A DNA stretch of 64,000 nt from contig NW_026782164.1 of NCBI RefSeq assembly GCF_031769215.1, positions 372,001 to 436,000 of the forward strand, given 5' to 3'. Numbering within the stretch: the first letter of the stretch is position 1; the number at the start of each line of letters is the position of its first letter. The position numbers and the translations under genes are program-made. The notes under the pieces are model-generated. The model saw only the letters and a list, made by a program, of their open reading frames with translations, did not search any database and was not told the DNA's origin. Shown one piece after another: positions 13,450-51,310 of the stretch. Origin of the DNA: Ylistrum balloti (Eukaryota).

Positions 13450-15921
13450 AGGGGTTATTGCAAATAGAATAAAATCTGTTCTAGGTAAACTTATTGAAAA
13501 TGACCAAACAGGATTTCTATCTGGGCGCTATATCGGTGAAAACACTAGACTTATCTACGATATAATGAACTTTACTGAGGAAAATAATATACCTGGAATG
13601 CTCCTAATAGTTGACTTTGAAAAAGCCTTTGATTCAGTGGCATGGGAATTTATAGATAAAACGCTTAACTTTTTTGGCTTCGGGGAGGGTATTAGGAAGT
13701 GGGTGAAAACTTTTCATAGAAATGTTAGTTCAGCAGTGAATCAAGGGGGGAACTTGTCAAATTTCTTCACTATCAAGCGTGGTTGCCGACAGGGCGATCC
13801 AATCGCACCCTATATCTTTATATTATGCACTGAAATCTTAGCTATTAGATTAAGAAATAACAAAAACATAAGAGGTATAAATGTATGCAACTTCCCCATT
13901 CTTCTCTCACAGTATGCCGATGATACATCCCTAATACTTGACGGGTCTGAAAAATCTTTGGGTGAATCTATTGTTGAGCTGAATTTATTTGCAAGTGTCT
14001 CTGGATTAAGAATTAATACAAGCAAAACACAGGTAATATGGATAGGCAATAAAAAATTTAGTACAGATATTTTTTTTCCGGAATTAAATCTACAGTGGGG
14101 GAGAGAGAAATTTACTTTATTAGGTATTGATTTTAGTGTAAATCTGCACGAAATGCCTAAAATGAATTTTGACAAAAAACTAATTAAACTAAAATCTTTG
14201 ATGAAGGCTTGGAGTAGAAGAATATTGACACCTATAGGAAAGATACAAATCATAAAGTTACTTTTAATTTCTCAATTTAATCATTTATTTATTGCTCTTC
14301 CTAATCCAAATACTACTTTCATTAATTCACTAAATACAATCCTTTTCAATTTCTTGTGGGGTGGGAAAACTGATAAGGTGAAAAGAAATATCATCACCAA
14401 GAATTTTTCTGAAGGTGGTTTAAAGATGATTAACATTCAAGCCTTTATTAGCGCACTGAAATTAGGTTGGCTCCGGAGATTTTTAAGTCCATCTACGAGC
14501 AAGTGGAAAATTTTATTTTCTAGATTGTTAAATAATGACATAGCTATGAATTGTGGAAGTGATTATTTTAAGATTTGTAAAGAAAAATGTAAAAATAAGT
14601 TTTGGTGTGATGTTTTTAAGGCATGGGAGCAATTATTGATATTGAAGTCTAAAGAGAAAGGTAGACAGCAGTCTCCTCTTAAAACTCCTCTATGGTATAA
14701 TCCACAGCTGACTATTGGTGGGAAATCTGTTTTTTATAAAGATTGGTTCACTAAGGGAATAAGGGTGGTAAATGATATGATTAAAGATAAAAGTACAATT
14801 ACTTTTTATTCTTTTAATGAATTTATTGAGAAATATGGGTTAAAAACAAACTTTCTTAGATTTCAAGGGCTGTTGAACTCTATTCGGAATAATATTGACT
14901 TGCAGAGAATTTTAGACTCTGATTTCTGTTTGCCATTTATCCCTTGTAGCATAGAACCTTTCTTCTCTAAATTAAAGGGCACTAAAGATTTGTATCAATG
15001 TTTTGTGGAAAACAATGAAATTCCCACTGGAAGGAAAAAGTGGGCCAAACAATTCGATTTTGAAGATCATATCTGGGCTAATATCTTTACCTTACCTTTT
15101 AAAATAACAAATAATTCTAACTTCCAGTGGTTTCAGTACAGAATTTTGCATTATATTTTAACAACAAACTCTATTCTCTATAAAGCAGGCATAGTTGACA
15201 GTCCATTCTGTACCTTCTGTAAATCTGAAACAGAAACTATCAATCATATCTTCTGGGAATGTGAAATGGTTCAAAACTTTCTGCAAAGCTTTGAAATTCT
15301 TCTAGAGGCACTACTTATCCCCTTTACTCTCAACAAAGAGTCCATTTTGTTTGGCTTCTTTTCTGCGAGAAAAGTGTATAGTAAAATCGACAATGAGATT
15401 AATATAATCATTAAGCAATATATCTATAAAATTAGATGCTTGAACAGTAAGTTGAACATAAATGCCCTTGTAAATCTAATAAAGGATCATCATAATATTA
15501 AAAAGTATATTGCTACTGGTAAGGGAGACCACTCTCTTGAACTTTTTAAGAATGAATGGAAGAAATGGGAAAAAATTCTTACTCTATAAATAATTCTTCT
15601 GTGTTTTTGATGATAGTTTTTTATTTTTTCTAAAACCTTTCCCCAATACCCTTGACAGTTTCATTATGAACGTTTCTTTAAGAAATATTGAATCTGCATC
15701 TTTCCTTGAGATTTTGAAAATTACCCCAAGATAAATTATCTTGTTCCCCGTTTTTTACTCGTCAGTTTCTACTTTTTATTTCGCTTTCTATATCTTTATC
15801 TTTGTCTTTCCTTTTATTGACTTTTATCCTGTCTGTCTCTCTCTTTCCCTCTCTCTTTATTTACTTATTTATTTATTTGTTTACCCTCTCTTTTTCTTTT
15901 CAAAAAAAAAAAAAAAAAAAA
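13450..15921 (+). mobile_element. 5'-truncated non-LTR retrotransposon, L1/Tx1-type ORF2 (RT plus C-terminal zinc knuckle), with 3' UTR and A20 tail
   Basis: ORF 13565..15589 has RT motifs DFEKAFDSV, GCRQGDPIAP and QYADD, and C-terminal CTFC..ETINHIFWEC. RT-like sequence (VIANRIKSVL..DQTGFLSGRYIGEN) extends upstream of the first Met to about 13450. There is no endonuclease or ORF1. Poly-A at 15902-15921; no TSD identified. Confidence 0.92.
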
Positions 15922-18881: not shown

Positions 18882-20470
18882 TACTGGACAAAATAAGTTA
18901 AGGATCATAAATTGTGACCATAATATCTTTAAAAATTCAAATCATGTATTGCCGGTAATTGCACTCGTAGTTTCTCCAATATGTACCTAAAGTCATGTCA
19001 AAGGTGAAAGCACGTGCATCTGAAGGTCTTGCCGTTCCGCTCTAGTTAACTATGGTGGTGTGAAAAACTGACTGGTCTATTACTACAGAGGAATCTTGCA
19101 GGTTTTGATTCTGTTACTTCTAAGCTAAAAAAAGTTGAATTTGGAAACATTTAATCAATTTGTAACGAAAACTTGAAAAACTAATCATGCGAAGACATTT
19201 AAATGATATGGAAGCCGCGCGAGCTATAGGGCTCCTTCAAGCTGGTCAAACTCAACGAAATGTGGCGGCACAGCTTCATGTTTCTCAGAGCGTGATTAGT
19301 AGGCTATGGAATCGCTATCAACAGACAAATAACGTCCGTCAACGCCCCAGATCTGGACGACCACGCTGTACGACAGCCCGACAGGACAGATTCATTTGCA
19401 TCACGGCACGACGTCAGCGGTTTTTGAGTGCTCCTGTCTTGAATCTTCAGTTTCAGCGTGCTACAAATCTAAGGATTTCATCCCAGAAAATCAGAAACAG
19501 ACTCCATGCCTCTAATTTACGAGCTAGAAGACCAGCAGTCCGACCAATTTTATCCAGAGGTCATCGACAATCCAGACATCAATGGGCCACTCATCATTTG
19601 AATTGGCAATTACGTCATTGGAGAAATGTTATGTTCACAGATGAGTCTAGGTTTTGTGTTGACTTCCATGACGGTAGGAGGAGGGTATGGAGAACCCAAG
19701 GAGAGCGCTATGCAGACTGCTGTGTTGTCCAGCATGATCGCTTTGGTGGTGGGTCAGTGATGGTTTGGGCAGGGATCAGTGTTGACTTCCATACAGACCT
19801 CTACATCATAGACAATGGATCTTTAACAGCTGTTCGATACAGGGACGAGATTCTACACCCTATAGTAAGGCCCATTGCAGGAGTTGTTGGCCATGATTTT
19901 ATACTGATGGATGATAATGCTCGTCCTCACCGTGCTCGTGTGGTCAACGACTATCTTCAACGTGAAGCAATCGTTCGCATGGACTGGACAAGTCGTTCTC
20001 CTGATCTGAACCCTATCGAGCATGCTTGGGACACCTTGCAACGCCGGGTTTCAGCTCGACCTAATCCGCCACAGAACCGCCAACAGCTTATGATTGCTCT
20101 GCAAGAGGAATGGCAGCGCATCCCACAGATCAGCCACCGACGAATAATAAGGAGCATGTGCAGACGTTGCAGGGCAGTTATTGATGTCAACGGAGGTCAT
20201 ACTGCCTATTAAACTGCCAATTGCAGTTTGATGAGTTTTCCTTGTCTACATGATTAACTTGCTCTACTTCCTCTTACACTTTGATTTCAAGGGTGCTGTT
20301 ACTCAGGGTTATCTGCTCTTGGTAGCAATTACCACAAATGAATTTGTTTTGTGTAATTAAAGACTAAAATGAATGTTCTGTCATTAAAATTTAAAATATA
20401 ATCATATTATTATTTGTATGTAAAACTGCACTGTTTCAAGTTTATGATCCTTAACTTATTTTGTTCAGTA
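18882..20470 (+). mobile_element. Full-length Tc1-family DNA transposon (about 1589 bp)
   Basis: 29-bp TIRs TACTG(G/A)ACAAAATAAGTTAAGGATCATAA at 18882-18910 and 20442-20470 with one mismatch, flanked by TA at 18880-81 and 20471-72. Confidence 0.95.
19187..20212 (+). CDS. Tc1-type DD34E transposase, 341 aa, uninterrupted
   Basis: N-terminal HTH with GRPR. Catalytic motifs FTDESRF, MDDNARPH and SPDLNPIEHAW, with 34 residues between the second D and the E. Confidence 0.96.
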   Translation: MRRHLNDMEAARAIGLLQAGQTQRNVAAQLHVSQSVISRLWNRYQQTNNVRQRPRSGRPRCTTARQDRFICITARRQRFLSAPVLNLQFQRATNLRISSQKIRNRLHASNLRARRPAVRPILSRGHRQSRHQWATHHLNWQLRHWRNVMFTDESRFCVDFHDGRRRVWRTQGERYADCCVVQHDRFGGGSVMVWAGISVDFHTDLYIIDNGSLTAVRYRDEILHPIVRPIAGVVGHDFILMDDNARPHRARVVNDYLQREAIVRMDWTSRSPDLNPIEHAWDTLQRRVSARPNPPQNRQQLMIALQEEWQRIPQISHRRIIRSMCRRCRAVIDVNGGHTAY

Positions 20471-26325: not shown

Positions 26326-27797
26326 AGAAGAGCAGTAAGGTCAACAAGCAGAAGAAATAAGGTTATTGCATGACATCACTTTCATTGTCTGCCTCATCGT
26401 TGATTTTATACAGAATTGTATATATGAAATAAATGATCTTGTTTCGTTTTCGTCTCTCTACATTTATCAGTAATACTAATGTAGATTTATATGATAATCA
26501 CGACCTTACTGTAATAAAATGTGACATTAGTTGATAACTAGAAAATCTTACCAATGTCATATTAATGATAGATATCCGTTGAATCACACACATATACTCC
26601 TTCACTCACACAAACAGAAACACATAAACGGTGATATGTGTAATTTTACGAAACATTCAATATGTTTGTGTTTCAACATGGCAATTTTTATCAGGTAGAT
26701 ATGTTTGAAATTTCTGTAGGTATATGAACACAGGGAGGAAAATACTTGAACATCACCCAAACTATGGATGGAAGTGTACATGCATGTACAAAGCTGAAAT
26801 GCTGTTTATTACATGATGTTTCTTCCTTTAATTCGTCAAAACATCAAAACGAAAATTCCAAGCGACCGACTAGAACTAGCGGAATTATAGTTTGATACAG
26901 TTTATAATAGAAAAGATGATTTGGACTTTGGAAAGTACTCTCTGTAAGTCTGTTGTTGATTGATTTTTAACTACAGGAAATATAATGCAAGGACATTATT
27001 GTTACCGGTATATTTTATTCAAACCGACCTCAGTAAAAGACAAGCTTAGGTCCAATGTCGAAACAACTTTTGATACATTTCTGGAATGTTGAAATCTTTA
27101 AATTCAGTATATATAACAATACGCTACGCAAACATCAAGATAATATCAAATATAATATATACATTTGTTAGTTTTGAACATAATTTCTTTTATTCAATGC
27201 CTGTTATCTTTTAGTATTGAAAAGCTATTCATATGAAAGAAAGCAATATCTTGTGTGACCTTCTTTGCCTATTTTCTTATCGGATGTGAACAGTACGGCA
27301 AACAAACAACAATGCATATCCTAAGTTCTTCAAATAAGTAAATATTTAGGTCACAAATAAGTTGAATGACAATTGTGAATAGCGACATTTACACTTTTCC
27401 AAACGGAACAAAACAACAAAAAATACGTACAAGTGTGCATGCATTGGATGTTTTATTTATCACAGTACAACATTGTGAAATGTGTTCATTATTGTTACAT
27501 ACGTTTACAAAAGATTTTGATTTGCATAATGATCAGTTGAAAGACATGATAAATTGGCACCGTGCCATCAGGACATTTCGCTTGTACCCGTAATACTATA
27601 TTTCATATATATTTTTGCTTACTACACTACCAGATAGATTAAACTTGTTTTAAAATGGTTGTTAATATAAGTTTCATAACATAAGTTATAAACACACAGT
27701 AACTAATATATCATTTAAAACTATATAGATTTACAGTATCGTGTGTTATGCAGCGGAAAGTGTTCCAGTAGATAGTATTGAAATAACAGCCATACGT

Positions 27798-28385
27798 TTA
27801 AAGTATGGTACAGCAAATGGATGTCCTGTGGCTGATGGGATAAGATTGGACACTAGCCTGTGATCTATAGGTTGGTGTCGGGTAAGGAAGTGCCCGTGTC
27901 GCATTTCTTCGAGCGAGTTCTGCTCTCCGTCGATCCAAACGTTCGCTCAAAAATTCCAAGGGGGTGAGACAATATGTTTGAAGCCACACAATTTTAAAGA
28001 ACATGAGTCTATTCACCTGCCGCTGTTGCCCAGCAATGAGAATATCATCAACAATAACCATATTTTCTCTCACAGACTCAAGCTCAATAAACTTGTTGCT
28101 GGAATCTCCGCACGCTTCTTCGTTAGGAATCAAACATTTGCCGATAAGATTCTTATGATCAAGGGATAACAACAGCACAGTTAGTTCATCAATATCGTCA
28201 TCTGTCAACAGACGATAATTTCCGAAGTCTGTGAATTTTTGGAGTTTGCTATTTCCTTTAGTAAGGTCCAAGACATTGCAAATGCATTTCAGATAATACA
28301 TGGCCTTACCCACGGGGTGGTCAGGAATACTCACTGTCTCTCCAACATCCCGTAGCTCTACTTTTTCTCTCTGCATAACGGCCAT
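27798..28385 (-). CDS. Uncharacterised 195-aa protein with C-terminal CaaX motif (CCTIL), paralog A
   Basis: Single-exon ATG-to-TAA ORF. It aligns without gaps to 35163..35705 over the first 162 aa, with 101 identical residues by hand count (about 62%). Confidence 0.88.
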   Translation of the reverse strand: MAVMQREKVELRDVGETVSIPDHPVGKAMYYLKCICNVLDLTKGNSKLQKFTDFGNYRLLTDDDIDELTVLLLSLDHKNLIGKCLIPNEEACGDSSNKFIELESVRENMVIVDDILIAGQQRQVNRLMFFKIVWLQTYCLTPLEFLSERLDRRRAELARRNATRALPYPTPTYRSQASVQSYPISHRTSICCTIL

Positions 28386-29479
28386 GATATCGTGGCTGGT
28401 ACAACGTGTTTAGTAAGCGAATGTTACCTGTTTCGCTTCTCAAGTTTATTTAAATGCATCTTCGATTTAAACAGTTTTTAAATAAATGAATACATCTATG
28501 TTAGTAATGCCCTAAGTGGCATTACATTTCTTGTGTCACCGTTACGTTTTACTCACTTGTATTGGGTCTTGGACTGATCTTGGATTACATTACGTAGATT
28601 TTTGTTGGCTAGTATAATCTGATTGATCTCATCTGTGCAAGTAATAAGCTTGGTGGTCATGCCTGGTCATGTCTATATATAAACAAACGTGTAAAGGAGC
28701 GTAATGAAATGAACAGTGTGGTTTAAATACAGACAATAAACTAGATTTTATAATTTGATGTGACCAATATTTTGTGTCTCACACTAACCATGTAAATAAA
28801 TTTAATTTATTTGTGGATCTGATAAGTGGATAAAAAACTTATTTTGTAAACACATAGGTATGTGGTAAAATTAGGAGAAGTACTTCGTTATGTGTCTGTT
28901 GATCACTTCATAAACAATTTCGTTGCAGCGTAGTCTAACTCCCACCTTCCTATGTTCTACTAAACAGAAGTAACCGTATATTGGCGATGATCGACAAAAA
29001 GAAAATAAACAATTGAAAGTCTAGCCAAAAGAAAGGCTAGGATTTAAATGAAAAAAGTAAGAGAAACGATCGCCTCCAAAACGATGTTTCGTGCATCATA
29101 TATTGCCTACTAAAGGTTAGGTGGTTTATTTTCGTTACATGGCTTGATTTTAGCTTCATTGAAAAAAACGGTGTTGCAGATGGACATGCAGCATGTACAT
29201 GTAAGATTTGAGATATACCTAGTATGTGTTGAACTAAATATGTATTTAGTTAAGAGTTTGTTGTATGAAAGTGATACTGGGGTTAAATATGAACCGATAT
29301 GCCCTATGACGTACTTGGTATATAAATTGTGTTTAATACAGATGCAATAAGCACCATTTCCCGCAGTGTGTTTATATCCAAAGAGGAGAAATCGGTGTGA
29401 CCAAATCGATTGAATGACGTCCACAGAAAAGATGTAGCAGAACTAGGACAGAATAACCTGAATATGTTGGGGGTGCGGG

Positions 29480-30060
29480 GTTGTTGCCATTCAGAAATGG
29501 AAAATTCGCAATAGGAAAATTAAAATCATCAAGCTTATCATATTGTTTGGTGCAAAGCTGTCCATATTGGTTTCGCTGTAGGAAGAGTGTGTCCTGTCCT
29601 TGATTTTTGGTGGATATACACGACGGACATGGTCAATACATTTCTTGTTATTTAAAGACAAGAAGTCATCAATGTATTTGTGACCTGTTTTGATAAGTTC
29701 TTCGATCAATTCAGACACGTATGATACCAAAAGCAAAACAGTCAACAGAGGGGCACTGTTAGATTGCATAGGTATGTCAATAGTCTGTTGGAAGTTCATA
29801 CCACCAAACTCGATGAAAATGTTGTCAACCAGAAAATCTATCGTTTTTATGTTTAGTAGTCAGTATAGATCAACTTTGATTTAGACGTATTTCTGCGAAA
29901 TACGCTTTAGTATAGTTCACAGCCATATATTTATACCACCGTTCACCATTCCGGTAAAAGAAAGCTCTTATGATAAGAGAACGAAGGCGTTCTTTCAGTT
30001 TAAAACGGGCACGGTGGTGTTCAAATGTTTTAAAGAAGGAATGCTTACCAGAAGAGGGTG
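29480..30060 (-). mobile_element. Decayed Penelope-like reverse transcriptase fragment
   Basis: The minus-strand translation QQTIDIPMQSNSAPLL..YIDDFLSLNN..YP matches the remembered PLE RT pattern GIPMGTNCAPLLA..YIDDVLSLNN..IYP. It is frameshifted. Confidence 0.7.
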
Positions 30061-31536
30061 TTGATAGGTCAAAAACTCTTTGGTGTTCTTTATAATCAAC
30101 ATACTATTAATTACTTTCTTGAGTAAACAGTATCACAATAAGACTGTAACCTAAATTTTATTTGTGCTTAGAATGGTAGTTATTTATTTTGACATAATAT
30201 TTCTTCGTTTGGAAGAATGCATGATGTTTCCTTTGTCATCAAGCGAGCTCAATTGTTTTTTTTTTCTGTGTTCAGAAAAAGTAATATTTATTTATTTATT
30301 TATTTATTTATTTTGTAAACACGGCCTATTCTGTCTCTTAAATGATCATAGTCATTCAAACGTTAATATCAATAACAGCATAATAAATGTGAATAATGAC
30401 ACTAAATTCTCATTTTAGAGACAAACATTTCCGGTCTATTCGCCGGACAGGCCAGCCCTAAGCTTTTTACTGGTGTGGGATTTCCTTTTATCCTGTACCT
30501 GGCGCTGCCACATATAATTTTGCTGTATTCGGCTGTGACGGAAAATTGCTGTATTTTAGCACATGCGGTAATTACTCTCTGAATTTATTTAAATATTACG
30601 TTTAGAAATATGAATAGTTGTTGAAATAAGCGATATTACATGTTGTAATGAACAGGTTGATCTATGAAAATTAATAAAATCGCTGTAATACCAGATGGAG
30701 TTTGGAATTATATTTCCGTGCGATGCATTTACTTTGTAGTCCGTCCTCAGGCAAAATTCAGCGTGACGTCAACATCACGAAAACAAAAAATGAACAAGAA
30801 AACTTTTAATAGACTGATTTTCAAGCAATGTAGCAAGATAAATAGAATACTTGGTCAACGTATTAAAACATAAGCTGTATTTTTGACTCCCTTGATCAAA
30901 AATCTGGCAACGCACGCCAAAGGCGCGAAGCTTTGGCGAGGGGTCTGCCCCAGAAAATTTTGAAAATTTTGGCTCCATTTCCTGCATTTTGAAAAGATAC
31001 AAATGAACATAACAATCAATAAGAAATATCAGTAAATGACAACATCCATAAACATAAAAAATCAGCATAAACTACTGCTCAGGTAAAAAATGTGTTTATA
31101 CATCATTCGGTTCTTTTGGGATGAATGTAATCTGACCTGTCAAATAACTTGTTGCATCCGTTTCCATCACGGCTAACGGGAAGTGAGAGTTCTGATTCTG
31201 TTACCTGAGCCGAGTGTAGTTTGTGTGGTGTTAGTTTTGGCAGAATACAAGTAGAATCGATAAAATCACTGAAATATAGATATGAAAAATACAGATGCAG
31301 AAAACTGAAAAATGGGACCCGCATCCCCCCTCCTCAATAGGTCAAAACAGGTACCATATAAGTGTGAAATATACATGTATGCATATTGGTGACTGGAAGG
31401 GGTCCATTTATGCTATGCTGGCAAATACCAATCAAGCTACATTCCCTTCTTTTTCATTCCTTAGGTTACACGTACATCTAGTAGCAGACACAGACGTACA
31501 AGAACAATGTACAACAATGTTTATCTTGTGGCGATT

Positions 31537-33949
31537 AGTTTTACTGACTCTTCATCAGTAATATTGGTGCTAGCGATGTTAAAATGGCTGAAACTGTTTT
31601 TAATTTTTTCAGGGATAGACTCCATTTTATTCTCATAAAAATAGTGGATTGAAATAGAGGTTTCTCTTTCTAAAACTTGCATGATTGCCAAGGCATTTTC
31701 ATGAATGTAATTAAAGGTGTTTTATCAACAGCAAAATTATAAATTGAAAAGTCTTTACCATATTGAAAAATATCATTAATTAAAATATTAAAGATCATCG
31801 GACTGAGTCATGGGGACTTCAAAAGTATTTCAAGACAACTGCTCCCAAAGGTTAATGAATACCAATCAATGGATTCTAACTAGATGTTAAAGTATTGACT
31901 TGGTCAGCAGATGCAAATTAGGGCACATAAGACTGAGTTCAGTAATCAGCATCATCTGTTAATGTCTATGCATACTAATTAGGTATCCTTTCATTTCTTT
32001 GGTCGGTCAGTTTTTGTGCTCTAACTTTCCTAAATATAACATATCAGAACATAGTAGTCGTTCGCCAAGAGTTACGTCCCCTTCACATCTTCGTCGTAAC
32101 AGGCTTCCCATTAGAAAGATACGACATTTGGCATGTTTTTATTAAAGTTAAGGTACAAATGGTTGTTGCTACATCTATTACATTTCGTGACAACGACACA
32201 AGGATGTTTTATGCATGCTCCAGTAGTTATAATGAAAAGCAATCAAAGGAAACATCCGTAAAATTACTCGAGTTCATCTTGCAGCTTGCTGCTATTACAA
32301 CGTGAAACACCATGGCGGACGAACGGGTTTCCCCAAGTTCAATATAGGTTGCTATAAATATTTATCCAATAAGCTATTACGCTCGATATGACGCATTAGG
32401 GATTTAATCCCATCTGTCAAATGAAATTGGTCAACAGAAAATCTATTTTAAGCCCGTAATTACCGGCATGACGATGCAGTGTTGATGCAAATAGACGCCT
32501 TCAGAAATAGTTCCGGGCCAAGGAAAAACGGACCAATGACAACAAAATTGAAACAGTAACTTTATTAACAACAATAAATTGACATTCCTTGTCAAATAAA
32601 GCATATATCAAAACTAGATATACATATATCCATTATCAAAAGCCATCACTCCACAACTATTTTTTTATTTAAAACGAAGTCAGAAACATTTGCATATTTA
32701 TATGTAGCCACAATGGCTTGTCTAGATAATTAAGATAATAAAAATAATTTCGAAAAGTCCCTGTGATTTTGCTACTTCTGGTTATTAATTTTGTAAATAT
32801 GCCTTTTTTTCTCACATGATGTACAAAATATTGCCCCATTAGGATATTCTGACAAGGTGAAGTTAACGACGCCATCAAAAGACCATGGCTGCAATAGTAA
32901 TAATGGTATTGACTTATCTGCAAATAAATTGGAAACCATACAACTTAATGCTAGAATCACTGTAATTCCTCCACCAGTATGAGAGATTTACATTATTCTG
33001 ATAGTGTAACAAACAAGCTCTGTCCCGTCAGTTTATCCTAATAGGGATCTATGAAGGTATAATGGAATGCTGACAATATTCATATATTGAACAATCATTT
33101 TAATTTGTCACACGAAACAAAAAAAAACAAGAGCCTGTTTCAGGTCACGAAATACGCCTGTGATTTTGTCTGACTATCACCTACACTATTTATGCTGTAT
33201 ATAATATATTGCATTTGTTTCAATGGTAATTGCGTAATACTTTGCAAAGTTATTGCACCGACATTGAAAAGGTTACAGACATTAATGGGCCGTAACTCTA
33301 AAAATTGTGGATCAAAAATCATGGAAATCAAACTCAATCTAGCTTTGATTGTACTTAAGCTTGCAATGAAAGTTAAAAGAAATCTGTTAAGGCTTAATAA
33401 ATTCCAAAATCGCTGGGACATTGAAATGTTTACGAACAGAGGGACATACGGACGGAAGATGGACGGATGGAAGACGAGAATACCATAATATGTCCTGTCA
33501 TTTGACGGATGTATAAAATACATAAATATCAAACAAAAAAAAAGAAGTAAATAAATGTAAAGATCATAAATCTAAAATAATAAGCAAAATCAGTTTTACT
33601 GACTCTTCATCAGTAATATTGGTGCTAGCGACGTTAAAATGGCTGAAACTGTTTTTAATTTTTTCAGGGATAGACTCCATTTTATTCTCATAAAAATAGT
33701 GGATTGAAATAGAGGTTTCTCTTTCTAAAACTTGCATGATTGCCAAGGCATTTTCATGAATGTAATTAAAGGTGTTTTATCAACAGCAAAATTATAAATT
33801 GAAAAGTCTTTACCATATTGAAAAATATCATTAATTAAAATATTAAAGATCATCGGACTGAGCCATGGGGACTTCAAAAGTATTTCAAGACAACTGCTCC
33901 CAAAGGTTGATGAATACCAATCAATGGATTCTAACTAGATGTTAAAGTA
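31537..33949. repeat. 358-bp direct repeat pair (31537-31894 and 33592-33949) enclosing a 1.7-kb copy of 37131-38828
   Basis: The 358-bp copies differ at about 3 positions. 31898-33592 is nearly identical to 37131-38828, as reflected by the duplicated short ORFs. Confidence 0.93.
33126..33518 (-). mobile_element. Short non-autonomous Helentron/HINE-like element (second copy at 38363-38755)
   Basis: On the minus strand it starts TTTTATACATCCGTCAAATGACAGGACATATTATGG (imperfect hairpin), then a (CCGT/CCAT)-like microsatellite, and ends CTCTTGTT. Confidence 0.55.
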
Positions 33950-34739
33950 AGTTGGCTACACGGTAAACAAGGCTGCCATGTTTTCCTGATTTGATATGCA
34001 CAATGTCAATTGATTTATATGAGATAGACTTATGGCAATACTAGACTACACAGGAATGTCCTATCACACGGGTATTACCATATGCACATATAACTGGAAC
34101 ACTTAAGTCACTCTCATGTTATCCGATTTAAAAATTTACCCTGCCTAACTGAGATATTAATGCTTCAGTACATAATCCATTAGTGAGTAGAACTGTAGTG
34201 ATATAAGGATCTAAGAAACAGCTAAGTTACCATTAAGTATCTATTTCCTGTGATCGTTTACAATCTGACAGCACTTCAATTTAGCCATATGAACAACCTA
34301 TTGTCATAATTGTTCATGATTAGCATATTATTTGACATTGGGTCTCGATCTGACTTGGACTGGCGAGTAATATGCGACTTCTGTTTCTCCACAAAACAAG
34401 CTACGATAATTGCAGAGATTTCTCTCACTTTACGCCTAATTAATCACAAAGGCCACAACAAACATACACCCCCCACCGCACTCCGGATCTTACCACGCGA
34501 TTTATAGATAGTTACTTTTAAAAGCAGGTAAATTTAGAATCAAATCAAATTTCCCTGATAAGTTTCTGGTTGATAACATCTCCATTGAGCGTGGTGGCAA
34601 AATCTTCCAAAAACTGCATTGCCATAACTATGGGAACTAACGTTGCCCGTCTGTGAGCTTACTTGTTTCTGTTTTGATATTAGACTGGATTTATCGAGGC
34701 TTTTCACAACAAGTAACAAAGGCCTTGCGAAGATTGATT

Positions 34740-34830
34740 TCATTTTTCACGTTAGGATATTTTGATGACGTCTTGTCTATTGATAACAATAGATTTAATG
34801 ACCACGTTCATCTTATATACCCAACAGAAT
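34740..34830 (+). mobile_element. Small Penelope-like RT relic
   Basis: Translation YFDDVLSIDNNRFNDHVHLIYPTEL matches the same RT motif as the relic at 29.6 kb. Confidence 0.6.
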
Positions 34831-35162
34831 TGTGGGGTTCCCGTATGCATCACAAATTGTAATATCTTTGGTGCGCTTCGGTGTCTTTGATCGCTTCGTT
34901 GTCACTTCCATGGTCCTCATTTTGCGTCGTGTCATTGCTTGGGTTTAAACTCAATGAAGTAAAACACACACAGTATGTAAATTCATATATATAGTTGTAT
35001 GGATATAGTATATCTTGCATTTTCACAATACACAATGTGAATTCGCTGAATGAAGCAACGGCGTTCTTTTAAATGATAAAGATTAGTATGTCCATGGACG
35101 GTATTAGGATATCAATTTTATAAAGTCGTGTTTTCCTCTATTATATTGAAAAAGAGAAATGC

Positions 35163-35705
35163 TTAAAGTATGGTACAACAGCTAGAGCCAGAACCCGTCT
35201 GATGGTAATACATCAGTCGAGCATTTCTTGCGTCGAGCTCCGCCTTTCGCCGTATCATGCGGTCACCCAAAAAACGTAAGGGGGCAATACAATACAGTTC
35301 AAGCCATGCCGTTTTGAAGAACATAATCCTATTCACACGTCGCTGTTGACCAGCAATGAGAATGTCATTCACTATTACCATGTTTTGTCTCATTTCTTGA
35401 AGCTCGAAGAATTTGTTGTTGGAATTTCCACATATTTCTTCATTGTGGAACAAACATTTACCAATCAGATCTTGTGGTCTCACGGATGATATAAGCAACG
35501 TTAGCGCGTCAATCTCGTTATCTGTCAAAAGGTAAAAGTTTTTGAAGTCAGTAAATCTCTGGAGATTACTGCTTCCATCATTTAGGTCCAAGACGTTGCA
35601 TATGCACCTCAGATAAAACATAGCCCGCGCCACGGGATTCGGTGGGATATTCACGGATTCTCCAATTTCCCGTATACCTAAGTGCTGTCGTTGCATGACT
35701 GCCAT
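35163..35705 (-). CDS. Uncharacterised 180-aa protein with C-terminal CaaX motif (CCTIL), paralog B
   Basis: Single-exon ATG-to-TAA ORF, paralogous to 27798..28385. Conservation is at protein level with many conservative substitutions. Confidence 0.88.
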   Translation of the reverse strand: MAVMQRQHLGIREIGESVNIPPNPVARAMFYLRCICNVLDLNDGSSNLQRFTDFKNFYLLTDNEIDALTLLISSVRPQDLIGKCLFHNEEICGNSNNKFFELQEMRQNMVIVNDILIAGQQRRVNRIMFFKTAWLELYCIAPLRFLGDRMIRRKAELDARNARLMYYHQTGSGSSCCTIL

Positions 35706-36843: not shown

Positions 36844-37330
36844 TTTTTTTTATCCCCCGCTTTCACCGAAACGGGGGATATTAATTTGGGTTTGTCTGTC
36901 TACCCGTCCGTCTGTCTGTCACACTTTCGTTTCCGTGTTCTAACTTACCCAAATATCATCCAATTTGGGTGAAACTTGGTCAGCAGATGCATCTTAGGGC
37001 CATTAAGACTGAGATTGACTATCAGTGTCATCGGTTAATAATAATGCATACTAATGAGGTATCCTTTAATTTCATTGGTCGGTTCATTTCGGTGCTCTAA
37101 CTTCCATAAATATAATCCGTTTTAGATGAAACTTGGTCAGCAGATGCAAATTAGGGCACATAAGACTGAGTTCAGTAATCAGCATCATCTGTTAATGTCT
37201 ATGCATCCTAATTAGGTATCCTTTCATTTCTTTGGTCGGTCAGTTTTTGTGCTCTAACTTTCCTAAATATAACATATCAGAACATAGTAGTCGTTCGCCA
37301 AGAGTTACGTCCCCTTCACATCTCCGTCGT
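36844..37330 (+). mobile_element. Non-autonomous Helentron/DINE-1-like element with internal tandem repeats
   Basis: Poly-T, subterminal inverted repeat TATCCCCCG...CGGGGGATA (36851-36880), (GTCT/GTCC)n microsatellite, then two units of about 157 bp starting GAAACTTGGTCAGCAGATGCA at 36971 and 37128. The 3' end is uncertain. Confidence 0.6.
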
Positions 37331-38828
37331 AACAGGCTTCCCATTAGAAAGATACGACATTTGGCATGTTTTTATTAAAGTTAAGGTACAAATGGTTGTT
37401 GCTACATCTATTACATTTCGTGACAACGACACAAGGATGTTTTATGCATGCTCCAGTAGTTATAATGAAAAGCAATCAAAGGAAACATCCGTAAAATTAC
37501 TCGAGTTCATCTTGCAGCTTGCTGCTATTACAACGTGAAACACCATGGCGGACGAACGGGTTTCCCCAAGTTCAATATAGGTTGCTATAAATATTTATTC
37601 AATAAGCTATTACGCTCGATATGACGCATTAGGGATTTAATCCCATCTGTCAAATGAAATTGGTCAACAGAAAATCTATTTTAAGCCCGTAATTACCGGC
37701 ATGACGATGCAGTGTTGATGCAAATAGACGCCTTCAGAAATAGTTCCGGGCCAAGGAAAAACGGACCAATGACAACAAAATTGAAACAGTAACTTTATTA
37801 ACAACAATAAATTGACATTCCTTGTCAAATAAAGCATATATCAAAACTAGATATACATATATCCATTATCAAAAGCCATCACTCCACAACTATTTTTTTA
37901 TTTAAAACGAAGTCAGAAACACTTGCATATTTATATGTAGCCACAATGGCTTGTCTAGATAATTAAGATAATAAAAATAATTTCGAAAAGTCCCTGTGAT
38001 TTTGCTACTTCTGGTTATTAATTTTGTAAATATGCCTTTTTTTCTCACATGATGTACAAAATATTGCCCCATTAGGATATTCTGACAAGGTGAAGTTAAC
38101 GACGCCATCAAAAGACCATGGCTGCAATAGTAATAATGGTATTGACTTATCTGCAAATAAATTGGAAACCATACAACTTAATGCTAGAATCACTGTAATT
38201 CCTCCACCAGTATGAGAGATTTACATTATTCTGATAGTGTAACAAACAAGCTCTGTCCCGTCAGTTTATCCTAATAGGGATCTATGAAGGTATAATGGAA
38301 TGCTGACAATATTCATATATTGAACAATCATTTTAATTTGTCACACGAAACAAAAAAAAACAAACAAGAGCCTGTTTCAGGTCACGAAATACGCCTGTGA
38401 TTTTGTCTGACTATCACCTACACTATTTATGCTGTATATAATATATTGCATTTGTTTCAATGGTAATTGCGTAATACTTTGCAAAGTTATTGCACCGACA
38501 TTGAAAAGGTTACAGACATTAATGGGCCGTAACTCTAAAAATTGTGGATCAAAAATCATGGAAATCAAACTCAATCTAGCTTTGATTGTACTTAAGCTTG
38601 CAATGAAAGTTAAAAGAAATCTGTTAAGGCTTAATAAATTCCAAAATCGCTGGGACATTGAAATGTTTACGAACAGAGGGACATACGGACGGAAGATGGA
38701 CGGATGGAAGACGAGAATACCATAATATGTCCTGTCATTTGACGGATGTATAAAATACATAAATATCAAACAAAAAAAAGGAGTAAATAAATGTAAAGAT
38801 CATAAATCTAAAATAATAAGCAAAATCA
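37131..38828. repeat. 1.7-kb segment duplicated at 31898-33592
   Basis: Near-identical sequence with only scattered substitutions and poly-A length differences. Confidence 0.95.
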
Positions 38829-44109: not shown

Positions 44110-45279
44110 TCAACAGTTTTTTTGAAGTGTCTGTTCAGTCTCTGGTGAAACCATTGCAACATTATTTGCAATTCTTGTAAGCAATGGTTGTATCTTATCT
44201 TCATCTAGGTCACTGATCCACAACTCTTTCAAATACTTGTCCATGTAATTTTTCTGACTAGTTATTTCCTCTGCTTTCATGTCAGTGTAGACGACTTGAA
44301 TGAATAGAACATCCTTATAAGGAGCATTATCACCATCACAGAAGCCATGAAGAAGAAGTGCTGCAAATGGTGTTAAGGATTCAAAATTATCCAGAATCAC
44401 ACCTTTTCCTTGTGACTGTCCAAAAATATAATGAAGCTTGTTATCTAACTCCTTTTTTTCTACTGCAGGACTCTCATGACTGAGATCTCTTGTTATATGT
44501 ATGTGTGACCCCTGGCTCCCATGGGATCTGTTAAACAGGCCAGAATATAGAGTAAGTAACTGTTTAGCTAAGCATTCTGCAGTGCGTGACTCTCCATCCT
44601 GGTTTTTTGGGACAACCATCATAAATACAGCAGGAGCTGCAGGGTTTGTCTCCACTATCATGGGTCGGAGCAATCCAAAGATTGTCCTCCAAAAGATTCT
44701 CTCTTGTCCAGGAAATTTCATCTTCAAATCCTTAAATCTTCTCTGAAAATGGTCAAAAGAAATTTTTGTGTTTCCTTCTGGAGTCAAGTTTCCACGAATG
44801 TTATCAGTATTGTTGAAGAAATGACAATTACTGTATATGCCAAACAAAACCATTACAATGGCCAGGACAATAAATGCATATGAGTGGAATGAACGCTCTC
44901 CTGAACTAGATTTTTTACTTGCTTCCTGTGTAGAATGTTCAGCTTTCTTACTTTTACATGGTGATGGACTTCTTTCAAAACTTGAATTACTGGAAAATCC
45001 ATGGTCTGACTGTGAACTGCCAACTGGGGAACATGTTTTGGGTGATTTTCGTGGAGGTGATTGTCCATCCTCAGAAAGTTTTGAAATATTTCGAGCATCA
45101 GGTGAAGTTGATTCTTTCCTTTGAGGAGACGAGTCTATTTCATCACCTGAAAAGTCTATTTCATTATCATTTTCTTTTTTATCATTTTTCCGGATTGGTT
45201 TTCTTGGTGATGGCCCTTTTGAGGGAGCATTTTTGCGTAAGTTGTATGGTGAACCACCGACTTTATTAACCTCGGCCAT
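44110..45279 (-). CDS. TOR1AIP: Torsin-1A-interacting protein (LAP1/LULL1 family), 389 aa from the ATG at 45279, single coding exon
   Basis: Ser/Pro/basic disordered N-terminus and one TM segment (YAFIVLAIVMVLFGIYS). The luminal domain has FPGQERIFW, AECLAKQL, LLHGFCDGDNAPYKD and C-terminal LLTRIAN, matching the LAP1C fold with its Arg finger. A splice acceptor at about 45319 lies upstream of the ATG. Confidence 0.88.
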   Translation of the reverse strand: MAEVNKVGGSPYNLRKNAPSKGPSPRKPIRKNDKKENDNEIDFSGDEIDSSPQRKESTSPDARNISKLSEDGQSPPRKSPKTCSPVGSSQSDHGFSSNSSFERSPSPCKSKKAEHSTQEASKKSSSGERSFHSYAFIVLAIVMVLFGIYSNCHFFNNTDNIRGNLTPEGNTKISFDHFQRRFKDLKMKFPGQERIFWRTIFGLLRPMIVETNPAAPAVFMMVVPKNQDGESRTAECLAKQLLTLYSGLFNRSHGSQGSHIHITRDLSHESPAVEKKELDNKLHYIFGQSQGKGVILDNFESLTPFAALLLHGFCDGDNAPYKDVLFIQVVYTDMKAEEITSQKNYMDKYLKELWISDLDEDKIQPLLTRIANNVAMVSPETEQTLQKNC

Positions 45280-46470
45280 GGGTAATAATCTCAACAGCTT
45301 GGTAGATGCCTTCAGTACCTAAAGTGTAAATAAACAATGAAAAAATAGCAATGGATAATGATTATTATTACAACTTCAAATCAACATAAATTCTTTAAGT
45401 TAAATATTCTAACTTCGTCTTTATGATCACTATAGGAAATTATAGTCTGAATTATTCTGATATTCTATGAATAAATTTAAATCAGAAACAATGAAATCCA
45501 GACTTATATTAAACAAAATATTGACGAACATCACAATAACTTGGACTACTCCATGCCATGGTGATCGAGCCTACACAACTGTACTGTTTGAAAGAAATCT
45601 GTTAAAAAAGTGAGATTTACACAAAAGAAAACAGCCTTGTTGTCATTATTTATTGATTCTGATCGTGTTTACTTCCAGCTGTTTGCTGAAATGTCTACAG
45701 AAAATGCTTAGGGAGATAGATAGGCCTTACTAGGAGTCGATATGAACATTAAAATATCGTTCCTGTATATGACGTAAAATACTGTACAAATTAAACAGAC
45801 TTTGAAAAATACCATCACATAAGTAAGACCACCTATATAATATTACGAATGAGTTCGTATTACATCAAGTTAAAAATGAAAACGCTAATTCAATTCGTAC
45901 ACGTTCGCATACTGGGAAAACGAGGCAAAAACGAAAGTAACCGAAAAACAATTCCGATGTTCAACATAGGGTAATATACGTGATGCCTCTCAAAAAACAC
46001 TATGTTATTATTTGTGGCCAAACTTTGTAAATAATACAGAATCACACACTGAACATCAGTTTTATCTTACGTTATTTTCCTTGAAGTAAACAGTTTGGTA
46101 GTTGATAAACGTTGCCTACCTTTGCACTTCGGCTACCGGAACCGCGGTAATATTTATACGACTAATAAATAAACCGGAATTAATTTCCGGATTTTTCTTC
46201 AATAAAGATATTGGATAATGTAAGCTCTATTCTTTTATCTTTTAATTTTCAATTGAGAATACGATACATGTAAGCTCTATTTCAGTGCAAAGTGGAGTCG
46301 ATCTGTTTTAATGTTATAACGGCCCTTGATGTAATATAGGAAGTTACGGAATGTAAAATGTTTCGGAGCATTTCATCATCATTTTGGATGTGTTCTATAT
46401 ATAGATTTATGTATTTCACCATCACATCACTGAAAGCGTTTTTAGGTTTTGTTGGGATATTTTAAAATAA

Positions 46471-49458: not shown

Positions 49459-50794
49459 TTATATTCGACTTTTTGTCTGCTTCAGAATTGGACATGCCTC
49501 CTCCGGTTCAACGGGAGACAACTCTCACTCAACTGCCAAACCCAAACCAGCTATGTGTACACTTTAAATATTTCGTGACTAACAAAAAGGAAATAGAGAA
49601 ATGAAAACAATAACGTTTTCAACTGAATCACATCAATATCTGAAATTTAAGAAACAGATTGAATTCTAGTTATGAAGGATAAGTTGTGTTAATCATACAT
49701 ACACATTAACACCGTGTAATATTTTTACAACTTTATTCCAACCTCACAACTTTTCGGCGTCATATTTTTGATGTGACATCAACAAAAAATGAGAATGATA
49801 TGAATTTGAACCAGTCTAATGTAATGCTGTTTTCACGAATGTTAACAAAAGTGGCAACGTTATGTGACAAACTGTATATTTAATTCGTTTCTATTTCAAG
49901 CCATAATTATGATAAAAATCAAATGGAGGCAGTCATTTGGAGGTGCCATTTTCGATTCCTGATGTGAATTGTATTGTTATTGTCTATCGTATGACACCAC
50001 AATCTATTTCAGACTGGCACACCCAACAAAAAACGCTCCAGAGTGTATTACGTTAGTGGCATATGCAAAATATTACTGGTGAACTATGGATAACTTAATC
50101 AATACGGAGGATGTGATTAGAATCTGTATTAACATACACGATCTCTGTCAACAACGTTCGATAGGGCTCGGCGAGATGGTTTCACCAAGTAAGCAAGTTC
50201 CAGGAGAAAATAAAACAGACAGAAAGGAAAAAGGATAAGGTCAGTGGGAAAACTTTATGGATGAAAATGGAAGAAGAGATGATTGTGAACAAGTACAGGT
50301 ATATACGTTTACGAACATGGAAACTGGCTGCTCAGGCAGATTTCCAGGAAAATTGCATGTAATAACATTTAGACAATAATTCTAAGGAGGATCCAGTCAT
50401 GATGTTCTACTAACTTTATCAGCCGTTGTGACTCCAAGAGGAACGATATGGACCAACCTCTGTCAGATCACGACAAACCAGGGCCATGCGTTGTCTTGTT
50501 TTTGTTTGTTGTGCTTTGTTTTTCTGTAGGTTTGAAGAAGTAGCGATGTGTACCACAAAGGCAATGAGAGCGAATAGAGGAAAAAACTTGTCCAAATGTA
50601 TTAAATCAGGCCAGGAAACATGGAAGCAGCTTTATGGTACCAAAAACACTTAAATTGATTTCAATGTCATTCTTAAGAAAGATCAACATCACCTGCAACG
50701 ATAATCTGGAATTCCTTGAAAGAGAACTTAGTATCACTTTCATCAGAGATCCTCACAAGCAAGAACAGGTGTCCGATACCTCCCGAACAGATGA

Positions 50795-51310
50795 TTATCA
50801 TCACCAAGAGAGGTCAACATCACCACCAAGAGAGGTCAACATCATCACCAAGAGAGGTCAACACACCACCAAGGGAGGTCAACATCACCACCAAGAGAGG
50901 TCAACAACACCACCAAGGGAGGTCAACATCACCACCAAGAGAGGTCAACAACACCACCAAGGGAGGTCAACATCACCACCAAGAAAGGTCAACAACACCA
51001 CCAAGAGAGGTCAACAACACCACCAAGAGAGGTCAACAACACCACCAAGGGAGGTCAACAACACCACCAAGGGAGGTCAACATCACCACCATGGGAGGTC
51101 AACATCACCACCAAGAGAGGTCAACAACACCACCAAGAGAGGTCAACAACACCGCCAAGAGAGGTCAACAACACCGCCAAGAGAGGTCAACAACACCACC
51201 AAGGGAGGTCAACATCACCACCAAGAGAGGTCAACAACACCACCAAGAGAGGTCAACAACACCGCCAAGAGAGATCAACATCACCGCTAAATGAGGTCAA
51301 CATCACCTTA
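50795..51310. repeat. 22-bp minisatellite, about 23 copies
   Basis: Unit CACCACCAAG(A/G)GAGGTCAACA(T/A). The T-poor strand explains the overlapping repetitive ORFs at 50634 and 50716. Confidence 0.95.

Follow-up and report, generated by a model that had tools for sequence, protein, structure and literature searches.

The locus and its two genes

The 64-kb window analysed here (the whole stretch from position 372,001 to 436,000 of contig NW_026782164.1, assembly GCF_031769215.1, of the scallop Ylistrum balloti) carries on its minus strand two short paralogous genes, hereafter copy A and copy B, whose products end in the same five residues, Cys-Cys-Thr-Ile-Leu (CCTIL), and belong to a large eukaryotic protein family. 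All coordinates below are window positions. Copy A (P0004) is a complete single-exon coding sequence (CDS) at 27798..28385 (minus strand), which was taken from the list of open reading frames (ORFs), encodes 195 amino acids plus a stop and matches the family profile with an E value of 3.4e-107; copy B (P0001), from the same list, is a complete single-exon CDS of 180 amino acids plus a stop at 35163..35705 (minus strand). The initial annotation, a reading of the letters alone, had described two uninterrupted paralogous frames of 195 and 180 amino acids, and these were found exactly as stated. Its further claims about the pair were equally borne out: the identity of about 62% over 162 ungapped residues was recovered as 101 identical positions in the first 162 (62.3%, with 69% identity at the nucleotide level), the blocks YLxCICNVLDL, LIGKCL..NEExCG, DILIAGQQRxVNRxMFF and RRxAEL.RNA are each present in both copies, and both copies retain the CCTIL-stop end despite linkers that cannot be aligned. 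Over their full length the two proteins are 55% identical (BLASTP, E 6e-81), with one gap of 15 residues in the linker.

Both proteins are built of the same parts. In copy A, residues 1-150 form the head domain (27936..28385, minus strand), whose alignments with copy B and with the family profile need no gap; residues 151-190 (27816..27935, minus strand) comprise the basic end of a helix and a low-complexity linker, which is unalignable to copy B past RRxAEL.RNA; and the CCTIL end (27801..27815, minus strand) reads as a CaaX box (Cys-Thr-Ile-Leu) with a second cysteine before it, kept in all scallop orthologues. The corresponding parts of copy B, on the same strand, are the head at residues 1-150 (35256..35705), modelled by AlphaFold2 as four helices, five short strands and a long helix, the basic helix end and short linker at residues 151-175 (35181..35255), delimited by the alignment and by a predicted local distance difference test score (pLDDT) of about 62 in the last block, and the CCTIL lipidation motif at 35166..35180, recognised from the sequence and from the family census given below. 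Candidate poly(A) signals, from a pattern scan only, lie 341 nucleotides past the stop of copy A (AATAAA, 27452..27457, minus strand) and 364 nucleotides past that of copy B (ATTAAA, 34794..34799, minus strand).

When 2 kb around each gene were aligned, nucleotide similarity was seen to start at ATCATGG, a Kozak-like start context common to both copies, and to dwindle within the linker; the flanks held no alignable DNA on either side. Within the CDS both genes are intronless, a single ORF running from the conserved Met-Ala start through to the stop after the CaaX box and taking in the whole region homologous to the family, and introns may still lie in the untranslated regions. The ORF of copy A is intact in four resequenced individuals, which show three synonymous and two conservative replacement differences; the replacements (G26A and I132M) are each toward the commonest residue in the family. 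All four individuals also carry about 586-588 extra bases relative to the window at position 27447, a point just downstream of copy A's candidate poly(A) signal, which is an insertion/deletion polymorphism or an assembly collapse.

Selection and scallop relatives

The initial annotation had proposed that the genes are under purifying selection. Between copies A and B the ratio of nonsynonymous to synonymous substitution (dN/dS, Nei-Gojobori) is 0.14-0.16, far from a value near 1, at a dS of about 1.7, which is saturated. Across all pairs of five scallop genes the ratio is 0.06-0.23; change is slower in the head (dN 0.14-0.34) than in the tail (dN 0.29-0.62). Since dN/dS is low and the similarity is confined to the coding sequence, the resemblance of the two copies is not due to chance.

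A word-index search returned scallop proteins only, namely the product of Pecten maximus LOC117320668, which is the closest relative of copy B (68% identity by BLASTP, 72% in the tree alignment), and one protein of Argopecten irradians (63%). In A. irradians the genes also stand in tandem, a 191-residue gene being followed 4.4 kb further on by a 219-residue paralogue; 9 kb upstream of this intact pair lies a degraded third copy (L002:1059-1340) with several stops, in which the N-terminal 23 codons are fused to a region homologous to residues 108-195. All five intact scallop cluster genes, from three genera, end in CC[TI]IL, while their linkers, of about 25-65 residues, are unalignable. The five form one clade (support 94/95), with an unresolved branching order inside it, so the duplications took place within the pectinids, though long ago. 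A second, divergent scallop subfamily is represented by LOC117321698 of Pecten maximus and LOC132544638 of Ylistrum balloti, both with a CaaX motif. Copies A and B are probably functional, tandemly duplicated, single-exon scallop genes.

A large family without a match in the libraries

Because the claim of an unrecognised family rested on the absence of relatives, an exhaustive HMMER search was run with a profile built from four scallop proteins, copy B among them, hits being counted as representatives of clusters at 50% identity. At E<=1e-3 the search returned 753 representatives, of which 377 reached E<=1e-10 and 36 reached E<=1e-30. Most members are 140-230 residues long, with the homologous region at the N-terminus; the family is characterised by the head of about 150 residues with eight near-invariant positions, and copies A and B carry all eight. 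The picture of a paralogous pair within a small family thus had to be abandoned for that of a very large one, which includes proteins with several heads and proteins fused to a ZZ zinc finger.

The named members come from bivalves (Pecten, Argopecten, Ylistrum, the oyster Magallana gigas with A0A8W8L2X1, and the freshwater mussel Potamilus streckersoni with two proteins), from the sponge Amphimedon queenslandica (A0A1X7TIR4), from the bdelloid rotifer Didymodactylos carnosus, and from mushroom-forming fungi of the Agaricales (Crassisporium funariophilum and Coprinopsis sp.), a spread in line with the patchy distribution suggested earlier. Every one of them is labelled "uncharacterized" or "hypothetical", and their RefSeq and UniProt names hold no domain label. 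No vertebrate, arthropod, nematode or prokaryote is among the named members, which is an impression rather than a census, most hits being nameless. Three metagenome contigs (L003-L005) carrying a tail-anchored member (P0042) are compact, intron-poor and animal-like, with genes for seven-transmembrane receptors, MACPF, NHL-repeat and ART-TPR proteins around it; they probably derive from a rotifer-like micro-animal in environmental samples.

The architecture of the relatives varies. Some proteins (P0088, P0011 and P0010) have two to four heads in tandem followed by a CaaX motif, whereas in the Agaricales proteins (P0096, P0124, P0130, P0142 and P0201-P0226) a ZZ zinc finger always comes after the head, and behind it another C-terminal stretch of about 200 residues, without a lipid anchor. 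When ten long relatives were compared with Pfam, the fungal-type fusions gave only ZZ, plus one sub-threshold SAP match (E 0.0008), and no other family was hit. Both the multi-head and the ZZ-fused architectures agree with a modular binding unit.

As to known families, copies A and B have nothing in Pfam at E<=1, and 134 relatives searched one by one share no Pfam family, the best recurring one appearing in two members at noise level. NCBIfam and PADLOC gave no match, and a feature search of the ESM Atlas with three members gave no usable one; among all PDB sequences the best profile match, to a phage baseplate protein (E 0.04), was rejected as noise. Nothing on the family was found in the literature for motif, accessions or architecture. 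The earlier assertions that the family is unrecognised and that its members are not GTPases, G-gamma subunits, lamins or DnaJ proteins both held when the defining domains were looked for: the proteins have no Pfam hit at E<=1, P-loop (GxxxxGK[ST]) or G-domain structural match that would mark a Ras-superfamily small GTPase, and they lack the GGL domain of G-protein gamma subunits, the intermediate-filament rod of lamins and the J domain with its HPD motif of A-type DnaJ proteins. [quoted passage not shown] The family, large and eukaryotic, is one without a name in the libraries and papers searched.

Predicted fold and conservation of the head

Copy B was modelled by AlphaFold2 with an alignment of 134 sequences. 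The model is confident, with a mean pLDDT of 89.9 and a predicted template-modelling score (pTM) of 0.83, rising to 90.7 and 0.87 for the head alone (residues 8-150). The predicted head is of the alpha+beta type: a short N-terminal strand and four helices (24-80) precede a small five-stranded sheet, made up of five short strands with two one-turn helices (85-130), and a long helix from residue 132 leads into a low-confidence tail. In the model the first half of this long helix packs on the domain, while its basic second half projects away. Foldseek found no neighbour in the PDB (best E about 1) and no match among predicted viral structures (best E 0.12), and a shape search of the ESM Atlas reached a template-modelling (TM) score of 0.39 at most. 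Structure prediction followed by Foldseek, a check proposed with the initial annotation, thus returned a confident model without a structural match, and the head, as modelled, is a candidate new fold, with no neighbour in these three collections.

Conservation across the family is concentrated in a limited set of positions. M29, Y31, P77, N97, F99 and M128 are conserved in at least 90% of sequences, P142 in 93% and W134 in 88%, and A26, L28, Y30, C34, L60, L68, L80, F86, G119 and V124 in more than 80%. The cysteines are less constant (C34 81%, C92 69%, C36 55% and C84 51%), C84 being replaced by valine in 42 of 133 sequences. A four-cysteine zinc site was considered and rejected, C84 and C36 being often replaced; with cysteines this variable an obligatory zinc site is unlikely. 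The family alignment also shows no conserved constellation of His, Asp, Glu, Ser or Lys in the head. Nearly every conserved position is hydrophobic or structural, with no polar set of catalytic type among them, and the head would therefore be a binding or scaffolding module rather than an enzyme; such a membrane-tethered module is, tentatively, the most likely of the roles considered.

The probable C-terminal anchor

Both scallop proteins have C-T-I-L directly before the stop, the sequence expected of a CaaX substrate. How far the end is shared was surveyed in the top 153 relatives. A cysteine at position -4 is found in 93 of the 153 (61%), with X being Leu in 58, Ser, Gln, Met or Ala in 25 and Ile, Val, Phe or Glu in 10, and 45 of these CaaX relatives have one to three further cysteines directly upstream. 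Twelve others (8%) have instead a strongly hydrophobic segment of at least 19 residues within the last 45, usually with juxtamembrane cysteines, and in a few relatives a string of poly-Cys forms the end. Head and anchor are separated by tails of 8-131 residues (median 34), which are rich in Arg, Ser, Pro, Gln and Thr and net positive in 72% of CaaX members. The suggestion that these are membrane-anchored proteins is strengthened by this census, in which a transmembrane tail can stand where most relatives have a CaaX motif.

On a quick maximum-likelihood tree of the head columns, which is weakly supported, the CaaX or transmembrane label changes at least 6 times, against 9-11 times in the ten listed runs with shuffled labels; given the weak support of the tree, these changes are read as several independent swaps. 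In different lineages the head is followed by a signal for prenyl and palmitoyl groups, by a tail anchor or by a patch of poly-Cys, and its working place would accordingly be the cytosolic face of a membrane; of all the sequence evidence, this gives the firmest backing to the lipidation proposed in the initial annotation. That the C-terminus serves as a membrane anchor is, as far as can be judged from the motifs, highly probable.

A leucine at the X position of a CaaX motif directs the protein to geranylgeranyltransferase I (GGTase-I), after which RCE1 and ICMT process the end. The cysteine adjoining the prenylated one can carry a second lipid, as in RhoB (CCKVL). Prenylation at CC motifs of the Rab type depends on the Rab fold and on REP and so does not apply to the present family. 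In Ykt6 (CCAIM), too, the cysteine upstream of the prenylated one takes a second lipid (PMC4974504, PMC8000380).

Other features of the window

Between and beside the two genes lie near-identical (99%) copies of a repeat, at 31534-33888 and 37131-38769, about 5.2 kb apart. Each holds the same 130-residue ORF (33140-33532 and 38377-38769), which has no Pfam hit, and the first copy contains an internal direct repeat of 300 nucleotides, 2055 nucleotides apart, that is possibly of the long terminal repeat type; the repeat is probably a young transposable element. Elsewhere in the window there are an ORF for a reverse transcriptase (13565-15589, plus strand; RVT_1 and zf-RVT) and an intact-looking Tc1/mariner-type transposase (19187-20212, plus strand; HTH_Tnp_Tc3_2 and DDE_3). 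On the minus strand, at 44110-45294, an ORF of 394 residues has a LAP1_C domain (lamina-associated polypeptide 1, an activator of the torsin AAA+ proteins; E 1e-17); a region rich in Ser and Pro and a hydrophobic segment lie ahead of it. The long ORFs at 955-2115 and 50634-51294 consist of tandem peptide repeats with GPGCSPLDDTGLS-like and RSTSPPREVNNTTKRGQQHHQE-like units; open in more than one or two frames, they are repeats of the minisatellite type and not obvious genes.

A proposed mechanism and its alternatives

The explanation that probably accounts best for these observations is that of a cytosolic head held at a membrane by a geranylgeranyl and palmitoyl tether and acting as a binding module, with lipidation, localisation and binding role all deduced from the features above. 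The layout of the protein would serve this directly: a head of about 150 residues starting with Met-Ala, then the basic helix end and a variable low-complexity linker, then the terminal Cys-Cys-Thr-Ile-Leu. With Leu as X, GGTase-I would be the enzyme that geranylgeranylates the CaaX cysteine (residue 192 in copy A, 177 in copy B); the final three residues would then be cut off and the new C-terminus methylated, and the cysteine immediately upstream would take a second lipid, most likely palmitate. The basic helix end may add an electrostatic pull toward acidic membranes. Such a flexible tether would keep the head on the cytosolic face of an endomembrane or of the plasma membrane, 25-65 residues of flexible chain away from the bilayer, where it could recruit or retain a partner.

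Several points weigh against this explanation. The binding role is argued from the absence of a catalytic signature, and a site for a ligand or metal might instead be lined by the near-invariant N97, M29 and M128 together with Cys34 and Cys92, which are conserved in part. That the proteins are prenylated, palmitoylated and located at membranes is predicted from their sequence. Neither a CaaX motif nor a transmembrane anchor is present in 48 of the 153 relatives, many of which look like truncated models and others of which are fungal fusions; as the fungal ZZ fusions clearly function with no lipid anchor, the head does not strictly require tethering to a membrane. Lastly, run searches with the scallop genes yielded DNA-type runs only, and no RNA run was found; the contigs from these runs continue evenly across intergenic DNA and thus carry no information on transcription, and four oyster Logan contigs compared for splice-type discontinuities were collinear and equally uninformative.

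The most serious rival is that of an immune or stress effector family, in which the membrane-tethered head would sense or restrict pathogens at the membranes of the host and the family would have been expanded by lineage-specific duplication, like many immune families of invertebrates. Tandem duplicates with a pseudogene fragment in Argopecten and more divergent paralogues elsewhere in scallop genomes are what such a history would leave, and bivalves, sponge and rotifers, among which this large family is patchily spread, are taxa with expanded immune repertoires; but selection is clearly purifying, with the head slower than the tail, no defence-related domain emerged from PADLOC or Pfam, the neighbouring genes show no consistent immune link, no RNA run was found, and the fungal ZZ-finger fusions point to a general binding module, so that a role in defence is rather unlikely. 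A different reading of the head makes it a small enzyme or a ligand- or metal-binding domain, for example with a pocket of methionine, cysteine and aromatic residues that would take up a metal, a hydrophobic ligand or the prenyl group of the protein itself, which in this last case would act as a lipid switch like Ykt6. The near-invariance of M29, M128, N97, Y31, F99 and W134, with Cys34 at 81% and Cys92 at 69%, would suit such a pocket, and the architecture parallels that of plant HIPPs (PMC12294528) and Ykt6 (PMC4974504); the cysteines, however, are not invariant (Val for C84 in 42 of 133, C36 at only 55%) and no set of His, Asp, Glu, Ser or Lys is kept, which leaves this reading distinctly improbable.

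It might also be supposed that the gene is carried by, or was domesticated from, a mobile element or virus, which would explain both the intronless copies and the patchy spread. The CDS is single-exon in scallops and in a rotifer-like contig, transposon copies lie between and beside the two genes, and one relative (P0074) has a long unrelated N-terminal extension. Copies A and B, however, share no flanking DNA and hence have neither terminal repeats nor an element body in common, the genes lie outside the repeats at 31.5-33.9 kb and 37.1-38.8 kb, purifying selection is strong, the genes stand in tandem arrays at the locus in both genera whose flanks were examined (in the window and in Argopecten), and no predicted viral protein structure matched; a mobile origin is accordingly very improbable. 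A bolder form of the tethered-head explanation would take the fold of the head to be genuinely new and the mark of a new class of proteins tethered to membranes, in which anchors of the prenyl/palmitoyl, tail-anchor and poly-Cys kinds are interchangeable; the head would then be either a lipid switch, with the protein's prenyl group tucked away in a pocket lined by methionine and aromatic residues, or a sensor at the membrane surface whose expansion in bivalves, sponges and rotifers served host defence. This is speculative and, in its full extent, unlikely.

If the tethered binding module is the right explanation, these genes open onto a sizeable eukaryotic domain family, of at least 753 clusters at 50% identity, which occurs in bivalves, a sponge, rotifers and mushroom-forming fungi, lies outside Pfam and has no member of solved structure; it may have gone unnoticed because no named member comes from a standard model organism. 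A confidently predicted domain without a detectable structural neighbour is a candidate new fold, and the repeated exchange of a CaaX/palmitoyl anchor for a transmembrane tail would be a natural experiment, from which it would follow that the C-terminus simply serves to hold the head at the membrane. The abundant "uncharacterized protein" entries in commercially important molluscs such as scallops and oysters can from here on be treated, and tested, as one group. Of the mechanism, the half that concerns the lipid anchor is ordinary, and the novel part is the head domain; what is solid is a new domain family, together with a neat argument from evolution for where it sits in the cell.

Comparison with known systems

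Ykt6, the plant HIPPs and the dually lipidated Rho GTPases come closest to the scallop proteins, which resemble them in architecture only and belong to none of them, although the anchor end may function as in a HIPP or in Ykt6. Ykt6, a longin SNARE ending in CCAIM, similarly has a globular N-terminal domain, a helix and a Cys-Cys-a-a-X end, with a prenyl group on the CaaX cysteine and a second lipid upstream (PMC4974504, PMC8000380), and its longin domain folds over its farnesyl (PMC4974504); the use of a transmembrane tail in some relatives and of lipids in others is also reminiscent of SNAREs in general. The scallop proteins differ from Ykt6 in having no longin or SNARE domain at E<=1 and no structural similarity, in the Leu at X (pointing to GGTase-I) where Ykt6 has Met (farnesyl), and in the variable disordered linker that parts the helix from the anchor. 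The 12 of 153 relatives with a single hydrophobic segment in the last 45 residues resemble tail-anchored proteins with a cytosolic N-terminal head, whereas the scallop proteins have no hydrophobic tail and carry a lipidation motif in its place.

Adjacent cysteines at the extreme C-terminus that bear a prenyl and a palmitoyl group are a feature of dually lipidated Rho GTPases, RhoB (CCKVL) among them. Cdc42-palm (CCIF) shares this arrangement (PMC9190017, PMC9868626). The plant HIPPs are confined to vascular plants and have an HMA domain with a CxxC metal site, whereas the present family gives no HMA hit and has no invariant cysteine pair. In both cases, nevertheless, a small globular domain is followed by a flexible low-complexity linker and a CaaX motif, in large lineage-specific families (PMC12294528); judged by this analogy, plant HIPPs are the closest counterpart of the scallop proteins in overall architecture and family dynamics.

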